Below are positions 8,090-19,349 of a stretch of 64,000 nt of DNA, one piece after another (position 1 is the stretch's first letter; the number at the start of each line of letters is the position of its first letter). The notes under the pieces were generated by a model, which had not been told where the DNA came from, ran no database searches, and saw only the letters and a program-made list of their open reading frames with translations. The DNA comes from Lepidodermella squamata (Eukaryota; Animalia; Gastrotricha), in assembly GCA_047495785.1 (NCBI GenBank), contig JBLDXI010000013.1:4092001-4156000 (forward strand), given 5' to 3'. A program made the position numbers and the translations under genes.

Positions 8090-8410
8090 ACTGAATTTAA
8101 ATTGAATTTATTGAAACTGCCATTTCGCGTTGCGCTAGTACACAGTGTTATGTTGTTATATATAGTATTTACGGAGATTTACAGGCGTCTCACCGTCGAA
8201 ACACAGTGTTTAGTAATATCATTAAACAAATTAGGTAAAATATATTTTTTAAACACAGAAATAGAGCGCGCGTTGATAACGGTTTCAGGTATTTTGTTCC
8301 ATATTTTATAGATTCTATTTCCAATACAAAACTTTTGAGGGTCCGTTCGACATATGGATGGAACAATATGGCGTTTTGCCTTTTTAAGGTTCGTTGTGCT
8401 AGTGAATAGG
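8090..8410 (-). mobile_element. 3' end of a CR1/L2-like LINE (ORF2 C-terminus and 3' UTR), split by the transposon insertion
   Basis: RTDPQKFCIGNRIYKIWNKIPETVINARSISVFK matches the CR1-type FxNRVxxxWNxLP tail; AATAAA plus short repeats near 8105. Confidence 0.8.
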
Positions 8411-8659
8411 CATGCTGTCGGCAGCGTCATCGGTGCCCATATTGCAAGCCGAAAATCCGCAACGACTGTCACGTTTATTTTTAATTGTTTATTAAATATA
8501 TTATATTAAATAATAATATTGTTAATCGGAATACAATGAAAATATTAAATAGCAACCCCTTCAACGTTCAACACGTTGCTAGGGGGCTCGGATGCGGTTT
8601 TTTTTCCCTAAAGCGGCAGCTGCTTCTAACCACTTGACGTCGTTATTCGCGCCAATCTG
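8411..8659 (+). repeat. Left terminal inverted repeat
   Basis: Reverse complement of 17618-17862 apart from three small indels. Confidence 0.97.
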
Positions 8660-8711
8660 AATATCCCTGTATTGTGACTGCTGATAGCATTGCTTTCGCT
8701 TTGCTTAAGGA

Positions 8712-11645
8712 ATGACTAATTATGTTGATATACCTCGCCCTGCTGTTACGCTAGTTTCGCCAGTTCAGAGTTAGTTCTGCCATGAAGCATTTTCTTATCG
8801 GATGGTTGCTTATAGGTGTTACAAATTAATCACAGATCAAAGTTAATCACAGAACCATACATGATGCATTTCAAGCGGGCATGATGTGTTTACCTCTTTG
8901 TTTCAACTTTTTAAATGTATCTCTAGATTTTTACTTGATGTCAAATCACAGTCTTGGGTCGGCAGGTTTGTTGAAGAAGTTAATGCTTCCAACTGCAACT
9001 ACTGACGATGCAAGTACCCCTCGTGTTCTTGGAGGTTTCCTTCGATTTCTTTGAAAAAAACTGTGAGTCTCCTTCCTATATTATTTTTCAGTCCTCAATG
9101 GTGCCTCTGCGATTCGGAGATCTCCTATGTTGCCTCTTTCGCCTTTGGTTTTGTCTATTGTCTCTACTCCGAAAGCTGTATTGTCGCCGTATATCGGTAT
9201 TCTTGCCATCGATAAAAAAATAGTTGCAATTTACAACTTTATTTCTTACTGGTATTAGCAAACTCTGCTAGTTCAGTTTTGACTGCAGTCACACCGCCTA
9301 GAATCGCCCCCAAGCGGTCGTTAGGCGCAGAAGCTGCTCCTCCTATTGGGCTAACACCGGCTAAAACCGTCCCCAAGCGATTGCTAGAAGGGAAAGCTTT
9401 GGAAGACTACAAAACAATCCGTTCATTAGGTGAGCATTTTATCTATTATGCCAGAATTTCCCTAATAATTGATTCTCAGAAGCTCAACTTGCTGCTACCA
9501 AGAGCAATCTTGACGAATGTCGCCGTGAGAGGGACATTTTTAAGACTTTTGTACCTCAAGGATTGGCCCTCAACGTCAAGGAACAAAATCCATTAGCTTT
9601 ATTGAGTCGCCAAAAACGATGCGATCGGCACAAAGGGCAGCTAATCAAGCCCTTGAATGCGCTGTTCGGGAGACTATCGAGCTTCGGTAGTTTCTATCCT
9701 GTCACCTCCCTGTCTGTACAAGTTAGTTTTTTTAATTATTGCTCAGAATTCATCTACACCTCACTCGTTGTCTAGGTGAACTTTAGCCATGGTGTTGCTG
9801 CAAAGAAAATTTGGGTTGGTGACGATGAGGCTAGGAAAACAGCCCTTAGAAGGTAAGATTTAAACTATTGCTAGCAATTAGTAGCAACTGATGACTTGTT
9901 TTAATCTAGTCTCGTGCGAGATTACTCCACGAAGTATTGGTCCATGAGGACGGTGTTTAAAATACTAAAAACCTCAACATATCAAATAACTCAGCGCGAA
10001 TTCGAACAAGAAAAGAAAATCCTAGCAAACATCCTGCCCATCCAGGTTGTTGTCGTTCCGGAGGGTAAAGACGTGACCAGTGCTGCTTTCGTGCTTCCTA
10101 GTCGTCAGATACCTTACCTTTTTCGCAATGGAATCGTTCCGAAGCCCGTGGCTCCAACTGTCAACATCCGTATTCAAGGCAAATACATTTTAAACTGAAA
10201 TTTCCAATATTTATTTTTATTTCTTTTCTAGGCGATGGTACGATTTTCCGGACGGGCAAATTTCCTCATTACCGACTCAATTACGGCTTTTTTCATCAGA
10301 AAGTCGCCGTCTCAACTGTAACCGAATACACTGCGGGCGTGTTTTTCGGCAAGGAATCGCGAGAAAACCTGGAATATTTATTGCCAGTATTCGATGATTT
10401 TAACGAGCTGAAAGTTACAGGCCTCACACTTGATGATGGTGTCAAATTAGATGTTACACTGTAAGTTGCCTCAGGCTTTTTCCAGAAGTCATTTATTTCA
10501 ATATTCTTTAAATATAGTTCCATTTGCGCTGATCTACCGGCTATTGGCAAGCTGGTTGGAACTAGCCACACCGACGCGCTTGGCTGCCCATGTTGCGTCT
10601 TCAATTTTGTTGACGACGCAAAGCCTTTGAATGTTCTCATCGACGAAAACGATCGCAAGCCGAAGCGCGATCTGCCTTCCAGCCTCGTTAAAATCGACGC
10701 TGACGACATTTACTGGTGCTCTCTTCACTGTGCCTTGCGTATCGCGTTCCTTGTTCTTCGAGCGGTAAGATCGTCATATCTATTCTCATTGCTCTTATTA
10801 TATTTTATTTTTTTTTATAGTTTTTTCTGTTTATGAAGGAGTCCGTGGTGGATTATGAGCTACGCATCTCCCAACTCGTCCAAAGTTACGACCGAAAGGC
10901 AGTTGTCAGCTTTGAAAAGAGCGAGGTGAAAATCAGCAACATGAATCACCACACGCTTTTCAAGCTGCTATTCGATGCTGACGAACTGTGGTCGCCGATG
11001 TCGGTCTGCAGGGGTGGTTGGGAAGTCGATTACGTCCTGAAGCAGCATCGCGGCTCGAAACCATTTAGCGACTTCCTCGCGCAAAAGCAGATTTCCGCCA
11101 AGTCTCTCACTCGCAAGGAGCTTGCTAGCGCAGCCGTTGACCACGGCTTTTTGGTCGAAGGGTCCCCGATTCAGGCCAAGTTGGTCCAGTTCGCTGAAGC
11201 CAAGAAGCTCTACAAAAAGCTATTCGCTCTAATTCGCTGTAAAGATCAGTCTATTCCGATTCCCGATTCCGACGCAGATTTTCACGCTTTCGCGAACCTC
11301 GTCCGTCGGCTTTCGGGATGCTATACCCCCTACCTTCACATATTTCAATTCCACACTTGGGATAGACTTGAACGTCTTCGCCTCGCTGGAACCTATCTTG
11401 CCGCCATTTCGGGTGAAAATGTCGAAATCCTGCACAAGATCGGGAAAGAACAGCTTGCGCATCAAGTCTGTCTTATAGGCGGTCATGAGAGTCAGCAGAT
11501 TATGGAATTGTGCAATGTCCGTTTGGCCTCGGATATTGGTGCGAATAATGCTTACATCGAATCTCAGCCAACTGTAGTTACATCAGCTGTCAACTTCAGC
11601 GATTCTAATGATTTCGAGCCATTCGATTTCACGTGCGATTGTTGA
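8712..11645 (+). CDS. Multi-exon DDE transposase, RAG1/Transib-like (CMC superfamily in the broad sense); 5' exons approximate
   Basis: Spliced core: IRIQG-D-GT ... GKESRENL ... SICA-D-LPAIGKLVG ... GCPCC ... WCSLHCALRI ... YTPYLHIFQFH ... LAAISGENV-E-ILHK. It has the D,D,E triad plus CxxC and H(4)H motifs, paralleling RAG1 DG / YDEK / CxLC / LHCD / TNYFHKTLAH / SEGNESGNK. Exons from 10232 to 11645 join in frame. Confidence 0.85.
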
Positions 11646-12880
11646 TTTTTCTTATTTCAATACGACTAATATTTTGAGTATTAATCTGAGTCTTTCAATG
11701 GATGTTTTGCATGGCTTTGTTGACTAAAAATGAGTATTCGTTCATTACTTTCATTTTTCGATGGCGATCTCGTTGTAGTTATAATTCGCAAAAAATCTTG
11801 TTTTCAATCTTGACTGAATGATAATTATTTGTGGTCTTAGCTAGTCCCACTAATCGATGGGCAATATATTTGTTTAATGCCGCCTTAATAATTGCTTGTA
11901 TTACTGATTAGAGGATACGTCTCTGAAAATACGTTTTTCAAATAGGAATAATTGTGGTTTCATATATTCATTTTGTATAAAATTGACTACGCCGCTTTTC
12001 AATCAACACTATGTCTCAGCCGATTAATTCCTCTTTTCTTCGTGACTATTGATCGTTCCATATGTTGTTAACCCGTGCAAACCGACATCGGTGATCAGTT
12101 CATCATCATCGAATAGCTGTTTGAAAATCGTGTGTTTTATTCTATTTTAATTATCACGTTCTGAGACGTCAACCGCCTTAATGATTTGGGGTCTTACCCA
12201 GTCCTACCGGTATTTCGATAATTCTCCACCTTAAATAATTACAAAAATTATAATTATATTATTGGAAAAATCTATCCGGTGGAATGTCGGTTTTATGGCC
12301 ATATAAAACCGCCTTGATATTGTTTAATAATGTATATTTTCTTCTCTGAGTTCGTTTTTTATAACGAAATCTCGTGCTTGATTAATATGGCGAATTCATT
12401 ATTTTATTATCATCGGCTGGTTTCATTGATATACGCTTTCCGATTTTCGATGAATTCGTATTAATTTAGCTCGACTTTCGTTTTCAGCTATCTCAATATT
12501 TTTTGTGATATTATTCGATAATTTCAAAGTTTTACGCCGATAATGTATAGCGGTATACAAAGCCACCTTAATAATATTTATGAGCTCCTAATTGGAATTA
12601 TCTCCTGATTTGCTATAAAATAGCATCCTCTCATTGAAACTCAGCTCTTTCTAAGCCGTTCTGTTATCTCTGCACCGACCTATTAATGGTATTGTTCGAT
12701 CTTCCGAGCTAAAAATCTTCACTAATTTGCCATTCGGTAATAAATAAACAGGAAACAAATAAAAAGCATGCCATGCGTGTGTTTTATTACGTGTTAAAAA
12801 TTGCGATTGTACAATATTGCGTTGAAGCAGCCATCATTCATTAGACAAAAAGCAACGAGAAAATCGGACAATTAAATGTA

Positions 12881-13950
12881 TCACTTCTTGAACAAGCGCT
12901 TAGGTTTCGGCGCTGGTTGTATTTTGCCCAGCCTCGAACAAAAGAGCCGAAATAAGATCCGGCGTTCCTGCTTGGCAGCACTGCTGTTGCGATCGTGATC
13001 GGGGTAAAGTCGGTATCGATTGCTCATAAGCACGCGAGGCTCGAGATCGAAATAGGCCGCCACCTCCTCGTCGGTTGTAGGTGTTGTAGGGTGGATACGA
13101 TTATCAGGATGCTAAAATATAATATAACATAGAGCCAAATAACAAAAATGAAATTAGACTAAAATTACCTCTTCAGCGGTTTTGCTTGGCGTCGTCTTCT
13201 GACGATCAGCCACGATTCGGGGTTGTCGCCGTTGTTTCGGGGTACTGGGAGTAGCCTTAACTTTTCGCTCCATGATATCTACCTTACGACAGGGGCGCTT
13301 ATGACTTGTTGATGACATGTTAAATAAAATGAGGTTCTAAAATAAATAAAAAACAGATTTTAGAATCGAACTGAATTTATACGAATTATAGCCTTGCAAA
13401 TGGCTTGCGGCGAGTTTTCAATAATAGGTTTTTTCATAGAAAACGAGACGTTATTTACAAGGCTAGTTCTAGTGTTTCTTTTCACGGCAAACAGCGAAAC
13501 GGCAAAGTCGAAACGGCTGAAAATTTCGGCGAGATGTTCGGCCGATAGTTGAATGTAGCGCTTTTTCTCGCTACAAAATTCAAACATTTTACTCGATATC
13601 ACATATTAGTCACTGTTTACCCACCTTTTAAAAATTTCCAGCTGAGCCAACTTACCTACGGGAAAAACGCAATGACGGGCTACGACCTTGAGCTGATTCA
13701 GCATTGGCTTAGCTGCTTCGCGATTAAGCTGGGTTTCGAGTGCTAGAGCCACTTGGTTAGCCAGAAATAGCATTTCTTTTCGGCGATCAAAAACAGCAAA
13801 AGGATCGAACAGCTTGAGTTCAAGGACGCGTACTAGCCGCACTTGTTGCTGTTTCTTTAAGTAATCGTCGACGCGCCGAAATTCAGTCACGGCAGAGCCA
13901 TAAATCACAGGCTTCTTCAAAGTTGCGCGCTCTCGCAAACAATAGGCCAT
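12881..13950 (-). CDS. Orphan multi-exon cargo gene inside the transposon (basic protein; exon structure partly uncertain)
   Basis: ATG at 13950; ORF segments at about 13950-13625, 13560-13460, 13335-13170 and 13111-12881 separated by short GT-AG introns; no recognisable domain. Confidence 0.5.
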
Positions 13951-14761
13951 AATTAAGGTGTATAATTAGTTAATGACAAAACTAAGGATCAAAAATATTC
14001 AATAGTATTAAATAGGTAGATATATACAGAAATATCGAACAAATTAAGGTGGCTAACTGATGCCCAAACAAAATGAGCAATTAATGAGCGCGCAGCTGGA
14101 TCAATGCGTAGAATATAGAAACGCTTGGATGAGAAAAAACTAATGCCGCAATAATTATTATAATAATAGCACCAAGCCGCGGAATAGGCGCACTTTCCGC
14201 CTTAAGTAAAAAGATTTTTAAGGTGGAGAGCGCAATATATGATAAGTCTTATAATAAGTGGTAGAGTTGTAACTGGGCCAAAGTAAAATATTTCGCGAAT
14301 TTTTGATATATGTCACTCAAACCGACCGATGCCGCGAACACATGGAAGATTGAGATCGCTATTTCGACCGATCGTACATCAGAGAGACACACCGTGAATT
14401 CACGCCGCCTTAATAAACGCCGGGCGGCGGGCGCGTTACTGCTTGGAGCGCGCGCACGCATATATAGCTTTACCAGGCACCTTCTAGGCACCAACAGGTG
14501 CGCTATACAACCTGAATTTCGACCCTTCCGACCACGGAATGACCACGGAATGACCACGGAAAGGTGTCAATATTTGAGAATAAAAGAATTCAATACGCGC
14601 GCAGAAGAATGGCATACGATCGAACAATCGCACACCTTTCAATGCGCTGCGCGCGCGCATTCGAGTGGATAGGCGCTAATATTATTACGAATTGAAGCAA
14701 GTGGGAAGAGGATGAAAAAAATTAAATACGCCTAAACCGCATAACTGAAAAGTAGCAAAAA

Positions 14762-15373
14762 ATGGGCAGGCGCAGAAATGCAGAGCAACTGGCTCAACAT
14801 CGCGAACAAATGCGGTTGATACGCGCAAATAGGACTCCTGACGAAATAGAGAAAGTTCGTGAGCGCGATCGGCGCCGCAAACAAGCCAAAACTGCGCTAA
14901 TTCAGTCCGTCAAATCGCAAGGTAATTTTTGGTGAATTTTTAAGGCTGTTATAAATATATGAATAAAAATGCAGATCAGTGTGGCGCGGTAGCATACTTG
15001 CCAACGGGATGCAACTACTCAGCGCGGACAATAAGCGAACGCGACTTCTTGCGAAAACAAGCATTGATGGCAGAAACGTTCGAGGCGGATAAAATTATTG
15101 GTAAATTCAAGTTTATTATATTTCCAGCCATATTCATCGCATTAATTTTCAGGGCTGTGCGATTTATCGCCGCTCATCGCCAACACACTGCCTCCACTCT
15201 CACCTGGCGAAATCACGCCACTGCTGGCACCGGACGATGCCGCGCAAACGTGGTGGCAAGAAATTAAAGACGATATGAGAAGCAGCTACCTTTCGCCGCC
15301 ACTGGCACGTTTTCGCATAGCGATTCTACCTAACTGTACTCAAAGCAAAATTCCGGCCATTGAATTTCCATAG
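14762..15373 (+). CDS. Orphan 3-exon cargo gene (14762-14921, 14975-15100, 15153-15373) with an R/E-rich N-terminus
   Basis: In-frame splicing gives MGRRRNAEQLAQHREQMRLIRANRTPDEIEKVRERDRRRKQ...DQCGAVAYLP...GLCDLSP...IPAIEFP*, with AATAAA directly after the stop. Confidence 0.6.
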
Positions 15374-15624
15374 AAATAAAACAGAGATATAATAACGCCT
15401 TCTTTTATTTCAACCGCGCTTTTTCAATCGATCATGAAAATATACCAAAGTTTGAGAAAAATTAAAGATATCGAAATTGCAGCAAGCCATTTGAGGATCA
15501 ATTCAATTCTACTTTGCGAATAAGATCATTCATTATTATACATAATTATTACAAAAATCAGTTCAGACTTTTTCGGCTGTTTCGAACATAGAGAATAATT
15601 AGAAAAAGAAATGCAGTATAATCA

Positions 15625-17299
15625 CTACTGCTGAATATTGCCACGACCAGTCAACATGAGATCACCATTAGCAACAGTGGTTATATTAATTTTATCATTT
15701 TTTACAGCCAACAACAGGCCAAAAAAAGCTTTAGAAACGTCCTTACGGTCTAAATTTTCTACAACGTGACTGAAGCAAACATCCTGATTTCTACACAAAA
15801 CGCTGAGCTGATTTTGACAAAAGCGATCGTTGTCATCGACAAAACTTAAAATTGAAGAGCTAATTAAATGAATAGGCTGAGATGAGCTATCTAATACAAC
15901 ATCTACCGCACCTACACTAATTTCTTCAGATTGGGCATCGGCTGATGATGATTCAACACAACACATGAGACTCTTCTTGGCGATCGGGGTGTATTTGTCC
16001 AAAATCGAGGTTGCTTTTCGCTTTGGTGCTGACAGACGGTCAAGAGGAACTCGCGATATCGGTATTTCTTCGTCAATCTGTTCCGGCTGCAAAGCAGGCT
16101 GCTGAAGGCGGCTTATCGAAAACTGAGTTGTCGGAATGATATCGCATCCGTCTCGATCTATAAATGAATACCGATATTTTCAATTCAAAAATTAGTCGTT
16201 GTAAATACTTACGGGGGTAATTTATCAGCCGAACTTCCTTGGAATATGCAAGACCATGAATCGCTGTATATAAAAATAAATATCGATAAGAAGTGAGACC
16301 AAATAATTATAAAACTAACCTTCGCAGTCAGGGTAGGCAGACGAATCATCCAAGATATTCGTGAATGGTAAAGTATCTAAACAAATATAGTAGATAACGC
16401 TAACGAATTAATGAAAATCCCAACCTAGAATGCTGAAAATGTTAGTCCTTAAACGAGAAGAAACTTCGATAGCAGGCCTTCTGATGAGAACGTCAGCTGG
16501 GATGATGTGATCACTTCTTAGGCCACCAATGCGATCCAAAGCTATTGAGCGACTGAAGAGTGGGGCAAACCAGAAGTCGAATTCCTTCTCTTCATACTCC
16601 AGCGTCGTGGCGGAGTTGAGGTGCTTTGCGGTATCGAAAATAGCAGCACGATCATCCCATTCAGGCACGTCTTTCAAAGTCAAGTACGACGCATGCTCTT
16701 CTTTCATCTCCTGAGTTAACAGATCAAAGATCGGGATGGTTGAATCGATGTCTCCGTTAACCAAGAGTCCAAAGCCATCGTCAACGATGGGTTCAGAATC
16801 CACATCAAAGTTGCAATTAGTACCGATCAACGGGGCACAAGGCAGCTCAAGCTGGTGCGAAGCTGACTCCAAGTAGACCACATCGCATAGCTGAAAGCAA
16901 CATCATAGTTGAAAAAAACAAAAATAACAATCTTGGGTATATAATTACCGAACGAATAATGGGCACATCACAGGATGGCAAGCGGCACCCCAGCTGCTCG
17001 AGAGCTTTCGACACGTAGGTGTTGGTATCGATAGTCTCGACGCGCTTAACAATATCAACCTGCAAAATGCAAAGGGAGTCATTAGCATCATGAAACAGCC
17101 TGCTGACTTTCAGGCTGTAAATAGTACTAAGAACATAAATTAGCTGGCCGTAAGTTCGAAGCTCGAGCGTAACTGCGGAACGAGCAAGATCACAAAACTG
17201 CTTAACGTCAACGGTGGCAACGATCGACGACAGCAGCGGCTGATTCGCGATAACACGGCGATAAACATTGCTACGGATAAAAGTCGTCAAACTCTCCAT
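15625..17299 (-). CDS. Divergent Rad21/Rec8-family alpha-kleisin (cohesin subunit), 5 exons, 485 aa, carried by the transposon
   Basis: Exons 17299-16949, 16890-16425, 16376-16320, 16263-16213 and 16157-15625 join in frame (1458 nt). N-terminal VATVDVKQFCD..AVTLELRTYGQLIYVLSTIYSLKVSRLFHDAN fits Rad21_Rec8_N (LRxSGxLLxGxxxIYxxKxxYLxxD). C-terminal VCFSHVVENLDRKDVSKAFFGLLLAVKNDKINI..ANGDLML fits the kleisin winged helix (F..L....RKxAAxxFxxxL....GDI). Confidence 0.85.
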
Positions 17300-17617
17300 C
17301 TAATAATGACAAAGCGGACTTTCAGGTGAGATTAAAATTGCAAGCCGGTGAGTACAAACTATAAACCAAGCGTTGCCTTAAAGTGATAGACGCAATAAAA
17401 TCTAACAGCACCAAGGAAGTCGTAAATAGCTGGCATGTAATCAAACATCAGTTACTTAAAATGCGGTTTGCGTTCTACCCTCGAGCTAACCTATATCTCC
17501 GACAATTATATGAGACATCGCAAGCAAGCACCAAGAAGCACCATAAGGGACAAAGTTTCTAAGTGTTTGCTATCAACAACATATTAGGGCATTTAGCAGT
17601 CTCAAATCCAACACGGG

Positions 17618-17862
17618 CAGATTGGCGCGCGAATAACGACGTCAAGTGGTTAGAAGCAGCTGCCGCTTTAGGGAAAACCGCATCCGAGCCCCCTAGCAAC
17701 GTTGAACGTTGAAGGGGTTGCTATTTAATATTTTCATTGTATTCCGATTAACAATATTATTATTTAATATAATATATTTAATAAACAATTAAAAATAAAC
17801 GTGACAGTCGTTGCGGATTTTCGGCTTGCAATATGGGCACCGATGACGCTGCCGACAGCATG
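17618..17862 (-). repeat. Right terminal inverted repeat
   Basis: Reverse complement of 8411-8659. Confidence 0.97.
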
Positions 17863-18530
17863 GGGATGAAAAAGAGACGTCAACAAGATTGTGATAGGCC
17901 TTAAAAGGCAAAACAGCAAATAGCGTAAAATTCGACGAAGTTCTAGGTAATGGTAAAATAACAGAATATTCGCATAACTCAGAATATAGGAAAAACAGTT
18001 TTTAATAACTTTTCTTGAATTTTTTCCAAATTGTCAATGACTTAAGAAGGTACGGACTGTAGACAGGCGAACAATAATCAAAAATAGGTAAGACGTAGGT
18101 TTTATATGCCATTATCTTCAGCCGATTACACCGAAAACATTTTAGAATAGCAAAACATAGGCTTGAACAACGATTCATGAGTGTAGCACAGTGTTGAGAA
18201 AAAATCAGTTTGTTGTCAACCAAGGTCTTTAGTAAAAGGAACACTCCGAACAGGCACATTATTTATGGAATAGTTTATAGAAATATCATCGTCAGATTTT
18301 CCGATTCGCATTACACAGCATTTTTCACAATTTAATGCGAATGGTCTGGACCTGGAAGGTCTGGACAATAAAATTTGCAGGCCTATATTTTAAATTGTCA
18401 TCTGCACAAAGTATAGTGGTGAGCGGTGAGGGTAAATAAAAGAGGTCCGAGCACTGAGCCTTGCGGCACGCCCCAGGATACCTACACCTCCGATTTACTG
18501 TTTCCAATTTTTATTCGGAATTTACGATCT
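17863..18530 (-). mobile_element. Degenerate CR1/L2-like LINE reverse transcriptase fragment; upstream half of the LINE split by the transposon
   Basis: LCADD (YADD-like), LVDNKLIFSQHC, AYKTYVLPIFDYCSPVYSPY, HNLVDVSF; frameshifted. Confidence 0.8.
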
Positions 18531-18949
18531 AAAAGATAGGACTTTAACCATGAGAGTAAGTTGGTCATGTAAATTCAAGCCAAATTGGATAACGTAAAAA
18601 TGCAATCGAGTGATGCATCTAATATCTGGCAAACAACACCCTTCTGACTTCTACCAAGTTAAAAAATTGCTGTATGAAAATGTATGTACTCTGTCACCGC
18701 TTTACCCCCCCCCCCTTTCCTCCCTCATTCTTAAGATCATTCATGTCATTTCAACGCATACTTTCTGGTACCACACAGCGAAAACGCATCCCAGCGCAAA
18801 ACGTGGCTGATCAAACAATGGGAAGCTCGCTATATTTCGCCACGTTTTATGCAATTCCACGTGGAGCCTATAAAAACGGCAAGCTTACCGACAGAAATTT
18901 CACTTTCGACTCCTCTTGCATCCAAATTTTTATTTTCTCATACTAGAAA

Positions 18950-19349
18950 ATGAAAAAGTTCCTGACTTGCGCCGTCGTTGTGGTAATAGGCATTTTGATG
19001 AATTTTAGATATTTGATGCATCACTCAATTGCATTTTAAGGCCATTTTCGTCGTTGTGGTATTGTCTGCCCCCATGCCGTCGCGTAAAACCACCGCTCAG
19101 CAGGATGCTTTTGCCAATGAAATCGGCGGGGAGGCTAAGAAAAACCAAACTGCGTTTGCCGCGAAAATCAAGGAACTTTACAAGTCTAATGGACTGTACG
19201 CTCTCATCAGCAAGTACTTTAGCAGTAATGCAGCAGCTGTCACCAATAGGATCGGTGAGATAGCCCAGGACGACAAGAGGCTCAGAGATTTCGTCGCTCT
19301 CCTCGCCTGGAACCCTGTAAATGTTGCTGTGAGTCTCTCAGCTATCTAG
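18950..19349 (+). CDS. Small secreted orphan protein, 2 exons (18950-18982, 19041-19349)
   Basis: TATAAAA near 18868; signal-like MKKFLTCAVVV/AIFVVVVLSA; phase-0 GT-AG intron joins in frame. Confidence 0.55.

Follow-up and report, generated by a model that had tools for sequence, protein, structure and literature searches.

A Rad21-type kleisin as probable accessory gene of a cut-and-paste DNA transposon in the gastrotrich Lepidodermella squamata

The stretch analysed here, 64,000 nucleotides of Lepidodermella squamata DNA (hereafter the window; C13:4092001-4156000, on contig JBLDXI010000013.1 of assembly GCA_047495785.1), contains at positions 8411-17862 a transposable element of 9,452 bp, in a genome with small introns. 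Its terminal inverted repeats (TIRs) enclose two convergent genes, with further, less well defined coding content between them (Table 1). Gene 1 reads inward from the left TIR and is a probable transposase. The gene that reads inward from the right TIR very likely encodes a kleisin, i.e., a relative of the Rad21 and Rec8 subunits of cohesin. Our reading, to which we assign a probability of roughly 0.9, is that gene 1 encodes a DDE transposase of the EnSpm/Mirage/Chapaev/Transib (CMCT) clade, producing a target-site duplication (TSD) of 2 bp, and that the diverged Rad21-type kleisin is a long-standing accessory gene that travels with the element, is transcribed and spliced, and is under purifying selection.

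An inverted-repeat search returned two pairs of TIR arms, 8411-8572 with 17701-17862 (162 nt, 100% identity) and 8602-8652 with 17627-17677 (51 nt, 100%). When both ends were read and aligned, the TIR came to about 240 bp in total, with three small indels as the sole interruptions, and the terminus CATGCTG recurs in every copy of the two subfamilies, A and B, that are described below. Comparison of the bases directly outside the TIRs revealed a TSD of 2 bp in eight of nine insertions of the family, where the chance of such a match is 1/16 per insertion. The duplicated letters are GG for the window copy, and TA, GA, GT, AA, CC, GA, and GA for the other insertions. The only mismatch was seen in an otherwise complete A copy (C13:3087349-3096781, locus L035), which has CC on one side and AT on the other; recombination between two copies, or a rearrangement of the flank, could explain the missing duplication.

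Further copies were sought in the whole assembly (121 Mb, 151 contigs). Subfamily A has at least six copies on four contigs, including the window copy; the others lie at C13:3087349-3096781, C24:2979405-2988856, C20:1855693-1865136, and, as a pair, within C32:2930799-2949679. Their TIRs are 97-100% identical, and full-length A copies, compared with that of the window over 9,452 bp, show 99.17-99.98% identity. In the C32 pair, one A copy sits inside the other at the equivalent of window position 16353, within exon 3 of the kleisin gene. Subfamily B (C21:1185380-1194583, C2:2010102-2019305, and C24:2346492-2354609) is diverged, with a TIR that is 87% identical to that of A, but its genes are arranged in the same order. 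Between A and B, the outer ~135 bp of the TIR is 87% conserved, even though synonymous sites of the genes have reached saturation. At least eight intact copies persist in the genome, and decayed fragments of the family are also present. Among the remnants, L045:3330-6754 (C74) holds rearranged, stop-containing pieces of transposase and kleisin, and C28:1126415-1126892 holds a catalytic exon that scores 126 bits against the A+B profile; these two represent at least one further subfamily.

Because of the TIRs, the 2-bp TSDs, the near-identical dispersed copies, and the nested insertion, the element is a mobile and recently active DNA transposon. With a putative transposase gene of its own, it has the generic marks of cut-and-paste transposition and looks autonomous.

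Table 1. Features of the transposon, in positions of the window
Feature	Position	Strand	Remark
Left TIR	8411-8652	+	terminus 5'-CATGCTG
Right TIR	17627-17862	-	pairs with left TIR
Left TSD copy, GG	8409-8410		equals GG at 17863-17864
Right TSD copy, GG	17863-17864		from flank comparison
Kleisin exon 1	16949-17299	-	Rad21_Rec8_N domain
Kleisin exon 2	16425-16890	-	acidic linker with 'PIVDDGFGLL' motif common to host Rad21-like genes
Kleisin exon 3	16320-16376	-	insertion point of nested copy in C32 element
Kleisin exon 4	16213-16263	-	joints in X1 contig
Kleisin exon 5 and stop codon	15625-16157	-	C-terminal winged-helix domain, roughly residues 420-480
Kleisin 3' untranslated region, minimum extent	15400-15624	-	X1 contig covering 15400-15974
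Gene 1, probable DDE transposase	8938-11645	+	~9 predicted exons, ~745 aa, inward from left TIR
Gene 1 exons 4-9 (predicted)	9480-9721, 9776-9852, 9910-10169, 10232-10460, 10518-10764, 10821-11645	+	
A/B-similar segment	12284-13998		77.5% nt identity A vs B; synonymous divergence (dS) ~0.40, saturated elsewhere
Middle gene, no assigned function	12881-13950	-	~4 predicted exons
Short basic ORF (open reading frame), 57 aa	14762-14935	+	weakly conserved in B

The kleisin gene and its transcript

The coding sequence of the kleisin gene comprises 1,458 nt in five exons on the minus strand, and specifies 485 residues, in exact agreement with the ORF proposed in the initial annotation of the window. 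All four introns (16891-16948, 16377-16424, 16264-16319, and 16158-16212) have GT..AG borders on the minus strand, and all four are absent from a 1,035-nt contig of the sequencing run X1. Cover by X1 and a second run, X2, was examined over 12000-17900 of the window. The depth in X1 is 74-99 over 15400-17196 and zero over most of the remaining stretch, whereas X2 provides even, DNA-like cover throughout; X1, which is listed as 'RNA?', thus behaves as RNA. There is no intron-less copy of the kleisin gene in the genome, and the joined-exon form is therefore a transcript, i.e., the kleisin gene is transcribed and correctly spliced. The nematode SL1 sequence was looked for and is absent. Four spliced genes between 250-bp TIRs had been described initially; RNA now supports splicing for the kleisin, while splicing is predicted for gene 1 and the middle gene, the evidence for the fourth gene is weak, and the TIRs are slightly shorter. 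Both runs are public and bear different organism labels, yet both match the element at ~99-100%; this implies either synonymous or strain-level labels, or an element common to closely related taxa.

As for the N-terminal domain, exon 1 matches the Pfam family Rad21_Rec8_N (PF04825) with 27.2 bits (E 4.4e-6, cutoff 23.1), and in a genome-wide scan the score is 26.4 bits for every A copy and 25.1 bits for every B copy, all above the cutoff. The top Protein Data Bank (PDB) chains for a profile of exon 1 from A and B are human and fission-yeast RAD21, whose alignments are in register, with weak E-values of 0.33 and 1. The genome contains three canonical host kleisin genes, H1 (C33:2869378), H2 (C21:581214), and H3 (C18:243733); H1 scores 127 bits against PF04825, and the other two score 111 and 75 bits. 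The closest of these to the transposon kleisin is H1 (BLASTP E 5e-4, 24.6% identity over 167 columns), and the alignment is collinear, running through the central helix of the N domain and on to a downstream 'PI.DDGFGLL' motif. H1 (L047:1501-3111, C33) is a single exon of 536 aa, with the top-scoring Rad21 N domain of the genome, without a Pfam match to the C domain, and without an ExxR site.

At the C-terminus, a comparison with hhalign between the A+B sequences and the three host kleisins places an RK..SKAFFGLLLAVKN block in register (P 0.002). An AlphaFold2 (AF2) model of the last 100 residues, computed from a two-sequence input, has a predicted local confidence (pLDDT) of ~73 over the domain and shows the helix-helix-helix-hairpin arrangement of a winged helix. 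Among 350,542 PDB chains, the top Foldseek match to this model is cohesin Scc1-C (6qpq_B), and kleisin C-domains bound to SMC (structural maintenance of chromosomes) heads account for about half of the 30 best matches (1w1w_E, 8ro6_B and relatives, 5h66_C, 4i99_C, and 7q2y_C), comprising Scc1-C, RAD21-C, ScpA-C, and Brn1 chains, with weak E-values of 0.035-0.15. With VIA-align, the best superposition is with ScpA-C (5h66_C; Z 8.7, rmsd 2.4 Å, 64 of 67 residues). The sequence identity of the modelled domain to kleisin C-domains is 15-21%, which is higher than to other winged helices. The winged-helix fold of the model is certain, and its assignment to the kleisin subtype is probable. Searches with exon 5 gave no relevant match in a PDB profile search and no match in a word-index protein search.

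The transposon kleisin and the host kleisins have in common an N-terminal Rad21_Rec8_N domain, an acidic, disordered linker (pI 4.5 in the transposon protein), a C-terminal winged helix with an RK..A.FF..LL..K motif, and a similar length (501-536 aa in the host, 485 aa here); the DDGFG motif is present in H1 and H2. The two differ in that the nearest host protein is only ~25% identical, in that the N domains of the host score 75-127 bits compared with 25-27 bits, and in that the first ~30 N-domain residues of the transposon protein are not recognisably kleisin-like. Unlike the host genes, the transposon kleisin is multi-copy and is flanked by TIRs as part of a mobile element. Because the collinear N domain, the DDGFG motif, the acidic linker, the terminal winged helix, and the host-like length occur together, a kleisin origin is very likely, and the gene is best described as a real but very diverged Rad21/Rec8-type alpha-kleisin with both end domains. 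A recent capture is excluded by the ~25% identity to host kleisins. A separase-type ExxR site is present neither in the A kleisin nor in the B exons, where ~1.4 sites would be expected by chance.

In subfamily B, the kleisin gene has the same place and orientation as in A, and indels are limited to the linker. Over 384 aligned codons, the proportions of nonsynonymous and synonymous differences between A and B (pN and pS) are 0.37 and 0.75, respectively, the latter saturated, which gives a pN/pS ratio of 0.50 (bootstrap 95% confidence interval 0.43-0.57), compared with 1.08 in an out-of-frame control where the kleisin nucleotides were shifted by one base. The corresponding ratios for gene 1 are 0.35 and 1.22, and introns do not align at all between A and B. 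The two end domains are the best-conserved parts of the protein, with 54% identity and an invariant RK.VSKAFFGLLLAVKN block. Within subfamily A, the coding sequence is intact in the five uninterrupted copies, with only two differences, both synonymous, and in the decayed elements L044 and L045 the kleisin frame has been lost along with the rest of the element. Since the frame has been kept despite saturated synonymous sites, with a pN/pS of 0.50 against 1.08 for the control, these comparisons indicate that the kleisin has been retained by purifying selection within the transposon lineage since the split between A and B.

The initial annotation, which quoted an N-terminal and a C-terminal kleisin motif that are both found in the ORF, had read the protein as a kleisin with two end domains under selection as an accessory gene. 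This proposal holds up well in light of the Pfam match in both subfamilies, the alignment with H1, the winged-helix model, and the pattern of substitution; of the two Pfam families suggested as a check, Rad21_Rec8_N scores above its cutoff and Rad21_Rec8 below. The opposite scenario, in which a neutrally evolving near-duplicate of a host gene occurs in this copy alone, is excluded on all three counts, and TIRs are found together with the kleisin in at least six A copies and in subfamily B.

Gene 1, the probable transposase

Gene 1 reads inward from the left TIR on the plus strand, as initially proposed, and its splice sites were predicted from A/B conservation and the GT-AG rule. The start codon at 8938 is conserved and the stop at 11645 is predicted; this start, together with three short 5' exons, is likely. 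Exon by exon, amino-acid identity between A and B is 44-76%. Exons 4-9 form an open frame of 625 codons, which every copy examined has kept intact; 12 nucleotide differences were counted, and the sole amino-acid change is common to two copies.

By inspection rather than by hidden Markov model (HMM), gene 1 contains a set of motifs in which A and B do not differ: the D of DGT, the D of CADLPA, C-P-x-C, H-IFQF-H, and N-V-E. The cysteines of C-P-x-C lie 18 and 21 residues downstream of the second D, and N-V-E lies 24 residues after H-IFQF-H. A C(2)C plus H(3-4)H signature is characteristic of the CMCT clade and RAG1, and the clade has 5'-CA..TG-3' termini and TSDs of 2-5 bp (Kojima, PMC12730594). 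The motifs of gene 1 agree with this signature, and the element termini CATG...CATG and the 2-bp TSD fall within the range of the clade. Furthermore, the named embedding neighbours of the exon with D and CxxC all belong to the clade, i.e., Plavaka (0.95), Transposase_21 (0.92), and RAG1 domains (0.86-0.89).

Within the clade, Transib has a 5-bp TSD and a TIR that starts with the conserved CAC of a CACAATG heptamer (PMC1131882). A Transib identity, as first suggested, was rejected by these characters, since the TSD here is 2 bp and the terminus CATGCTG, and profiles of exons A3 and A4 matched neither RAG1 nor Transib chains at E <= 10 and no Pfam RAG1 match was obtained. The accompanying label 'RAG1-like' applies to the set of D, D, C(2)C, H(4)H, and E motifs, which is common to the CMCT clade, but not at the level of a sequence-profile match. 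EnSpm/CACTA and Chapaev proper were likewise rejected, where the termini are CAC..GTG and the TSD is 3 bp for EnSpm and 3-4 bp for Chapaev (PMC12730594, in part), compared with CAT..ATG and 2 bp here. The element shares with CACTA (En/Spm), Chapaev, and Mirage the 5'-CA..TG-3' termini, a short TSD, and the same set of catalytic and zinc motifs, and Plavaka and Transposase_21 of the CMC group are the closest named embedding neighbours of the catalytic exon. The 2-bp TSD resembles that of Mirage in Repbase. Altogether, gene 1 is probably a transposase of the CMCT clade, on the CACTA/Mirage side and not Transib, as placed by motifs, termini, TSD, and embedding neighbours.

No match was obtained for gene 1 exons in PDB profile searches, for the large exon or a profile of the D..CxxC exon in word-index searches, or for the large exon in an Atlas search. 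The Transposase_21 family of Pfam (PF02992) matches other elements of this genome and none of the present copies, and across the genome its matches and those of the catalytic-exon profile have no location in common. An AF2 model of the 274-aa exon had a mean pLDDT of 41 and was not used for a fold search. Gene 1 would add a CACTA/Mirage-like transposase lineage that current HMM libraries miss.

Possible roles of the kleisin and relation to known systems

In all kleisins, the two ends contact the neck and head of SMC proteins. The transposon kleisin retains both ring-closing ends, of which the N-terminal helical domain would contact the SMC3 neck and the C-terminal winged helix the SMC1 head. 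Because both are kept, the protein would most likely join host SMC1/SMC3, or another host SMC pair, to produce a cohesin-like complex specific to the transposon. With this complex the two ends of the element could be held together; it could also link the broken donor site with the sister chromatid, where homologous repair would restore the excised copy and the element would gain copies. Host SMC1/SMC3 ATPases would in this manner be turned by the element's own kleisin into a dedicated cohesin, used for end synapsis or for sister-templated repair, and cut-and-paste transposition would become copy-gaining. We put this forward tentatively, as a possibility well below even odds, and the account as a whole, with a host-SMC mechanism included, we place slightly short of an even chance. 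If true, it would be the first eukaryotic mobile element to hijack an SMC ring via a subunit of its own. In Paramecium, the domesticated transposase PiggyMac works with the help of a developmental condensin I made up of host paralogues (bioRxiv 10.1101/2025.10.03.680307), and by analogy this precedent makes a partnership between SMC proteins and a transposase plausible.

Several results weigh against a kleisin that engages SMC proteins in the canonical manner, or against the broader reading of a CMCT transposase accompanied by a kleisin. Positions 1-31 of the PF04825 profile are unmatched, and to judge from this gap, binding to the SMC3 neck may be altered. The C domain scores 13 bits against Rad21_Rec8 (PF04824; E 0.066), below the cutoff of 22.7; this profile also misses true kleisins of the same genome, since H3 scores 19.4 bits, below the cutoff, and H1 gives no match. 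In VIA-align, generic winged helices are nearly as good (Z 7-8.3) as the kleisin C-domains. A HMMER search with an A+B profile of the N domain gave no match at E <= 0.001 among 1.84 billion protein representatives, a result that is silent on canonical kleisins, since a similarity of ~26 bits is too weak to be significant against so large a library. The conservation evidence comes from two subfamilies in one genome. As for gene 1, no exon has a Pfam match at E <= 10, and there is no HMM-level match to any named transposase family.

The kleisin-derived protein may instead be a direct partner of the transposase, comparable to TnpA of En/Spm or RAG2 of ProtoRAG, with a winged helix that binds the element ends or the transposase and without SMC engagement. 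This would agree with the convergent two-gene layout familiar from ProtoRAG and MuDR, with the frequent use of winged helices for DNA binding and the close structural match of generic DNA-binding ones, with the strong divergence of the N domain and its unmatched start, and with the conserved outer 135 bp of the TIR, where protein-binding sites are to be expected. However, both end domains are best conserved between A and B, as expected if both SMC interfaces matter, and subterminal direct repeats of the type bound by TnpA were not found in the element; such a role seems somewhat unlikely. A decoy or antagonist, which occupies host SMC heads or kleisin-binding regulators without a working ring, and thereby blunts SMC-based restraint or locally loosens cohesion, is an unlikely explanation. 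It would account for the retained end motifs and DDGFG motif of host Rad21-like genes on a linker that is otherwise unrelated to host kleisins, for the missing ExxR site, and for expression that is strong relative to the remaining 12000-17900 stretch; on the other hand, the missing site is uninformative, given the ~1.4 expected by chance and its absence from H1, and a general cohesin antagonist would be expected to burden the host, whereas at least eight intact copies persist.

The selection data disfavour a mere passenger, i.e., a host gene captured long ago and of no benefit to the element, although DNA transposons of the CMCT clade and others are known to capture host genes. The gene is intact and collinear in two saturated subfamilies with a pN/pS well below its control, the splice sites are kept and used, young copies differ only synonymously, decayed elements lose the kleisin together with the transposase, and identity to any host kleisin is only ~25%, so that we consider this distinctly unlikely. 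Finally, the N-terminal Pfam match and the winged helix might be products of chance or convergence in a protein that is not a kleisin. Each score is indeed modest (25-27 bits, BLASTP E 5e-4, Foldseek E 0.035), and the search of 1.84 billion proteins was empty at E <= 0.001. Against this, the N domain lies at the extreme N-terminus and exceeds the Pfam cutoff in two sequences with 54% identity to one another, the DDGFG motif comes next, in the order known from host Rad21-like genes, the winged helix lies at the extreme C-terminus with kleisin C-domains as top structural matches at 15-21% identity, and the C-terminal motif is in register with the host kleisins; a coincidence on this scale is highly improbable.

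Kleisins are core and usually single-purpose subunits of the rings that organise chromosomes and hold them together, and they are not known to occur as cargo of eukaryotic transposons. En/Spm encodes a second protein that is required for transposition; in the CMC group the accessory gene is not a kleisin, as it is here, and Transposase_21 matches other elements of this genome but not this one. With regard to ProtoRAG, RAG1-RAG2, and Transib, a second gene converges on the transposase here as in the ProtoRAG layout, but the partner here is a kleisin and not RAG2-like, RAG1/Transib structures have no sequence-profile match from gene 1, and the 5-bp TSD and invariant CAC (PMC1131882) are replaced by 2 bp and CAT. 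Fungal DNA transposons of several families, CMCT lineages included, stably carry a TET/JBP dioxygenase gene beside the transposase (PMC12730594). That cargo is similarly a chromatin-related gene of host type, but specifies an enzyme acting on DNA methylation rather than a structural subunit of an SMC complex. In the Paramecium case (10.1101/2025.10.03.680307), an SMC-kleisin complex also acts with a nuclease of the cut-and-paste transposase type; there, the condensin subunits are host paralogues, the transposase is domesticated, and SMC and kleisin genes are not located within any mobile element. A full-text literature search for transposons bearing kleisin, Rad21, Rec8, or cohesin genes found no description, in line with the initial annotation, which knew of none. 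Cargo-bearing DNA transposons are known, and kleisin cargo is unprecedented.

A kleisin that is kept intact and expressed until synonymous sites are saturated implies a payoff to the transposon. The element offers an entry to the question of how mobile DNA might exploit SMC complexes, be it for the pairing of ends, for repair templated by the sister, or for escape from host control, and it supplies a natural, minimal, and highly diverged kleisin with which to ask what residues are truly needed for engagement of the SMC head.

Remaining content of the element and its flanks

The middle gene occurs only in copies of this transposon family and fragments thereof. It has 71-94% amino-acid identity between A and B, with a pN/pS of 0.22 and a dS of ~0.40, but neither a Pfam match (E <= 10) nor an Atlas match, and RNA cover in X1 is zero. 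The low A/B divergence of the segment that contains it suggests that this segment was exchanged recently between the subfamilies or is unusually strongly constrained. Over the same segment, X2 has an excess depth of up to 3.5-fold and many variants. The 57-aa ORF is 51% identical between A and B over 41 residues and has trace RNA cover in X1.

Between gene 1 and the middle gene (12000-12787), X1 provides low but real cover (depth 6-20, in several short contigs) without a convincing ORF, and Rfam has no match in this interval or in a scan over the element. Joints of the type 'opposite strands' were recorded in X1 at 12620/12728, 12897/12975, and 14758/14871.

On both sides of the element, peptides encoded on the minus strand (8179-8472 and 18002-18368) resemble the tail of a reverse transcriptase, and from these the element looks to have inserted into the 3' part of an ORF2 remnant of a long interspersed nuclear element (LINE). 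In an attempt to reconstruct the empty site, no second copy of this LINE was found among the loci examined. Directly to the right of the element, a pair of 31-nt inverted repeats (18597-18627 and 19007-19037, 94% complementary, 379 nt apart) may represent a small insertion resembling a miniature inverted-repeat transposable element.

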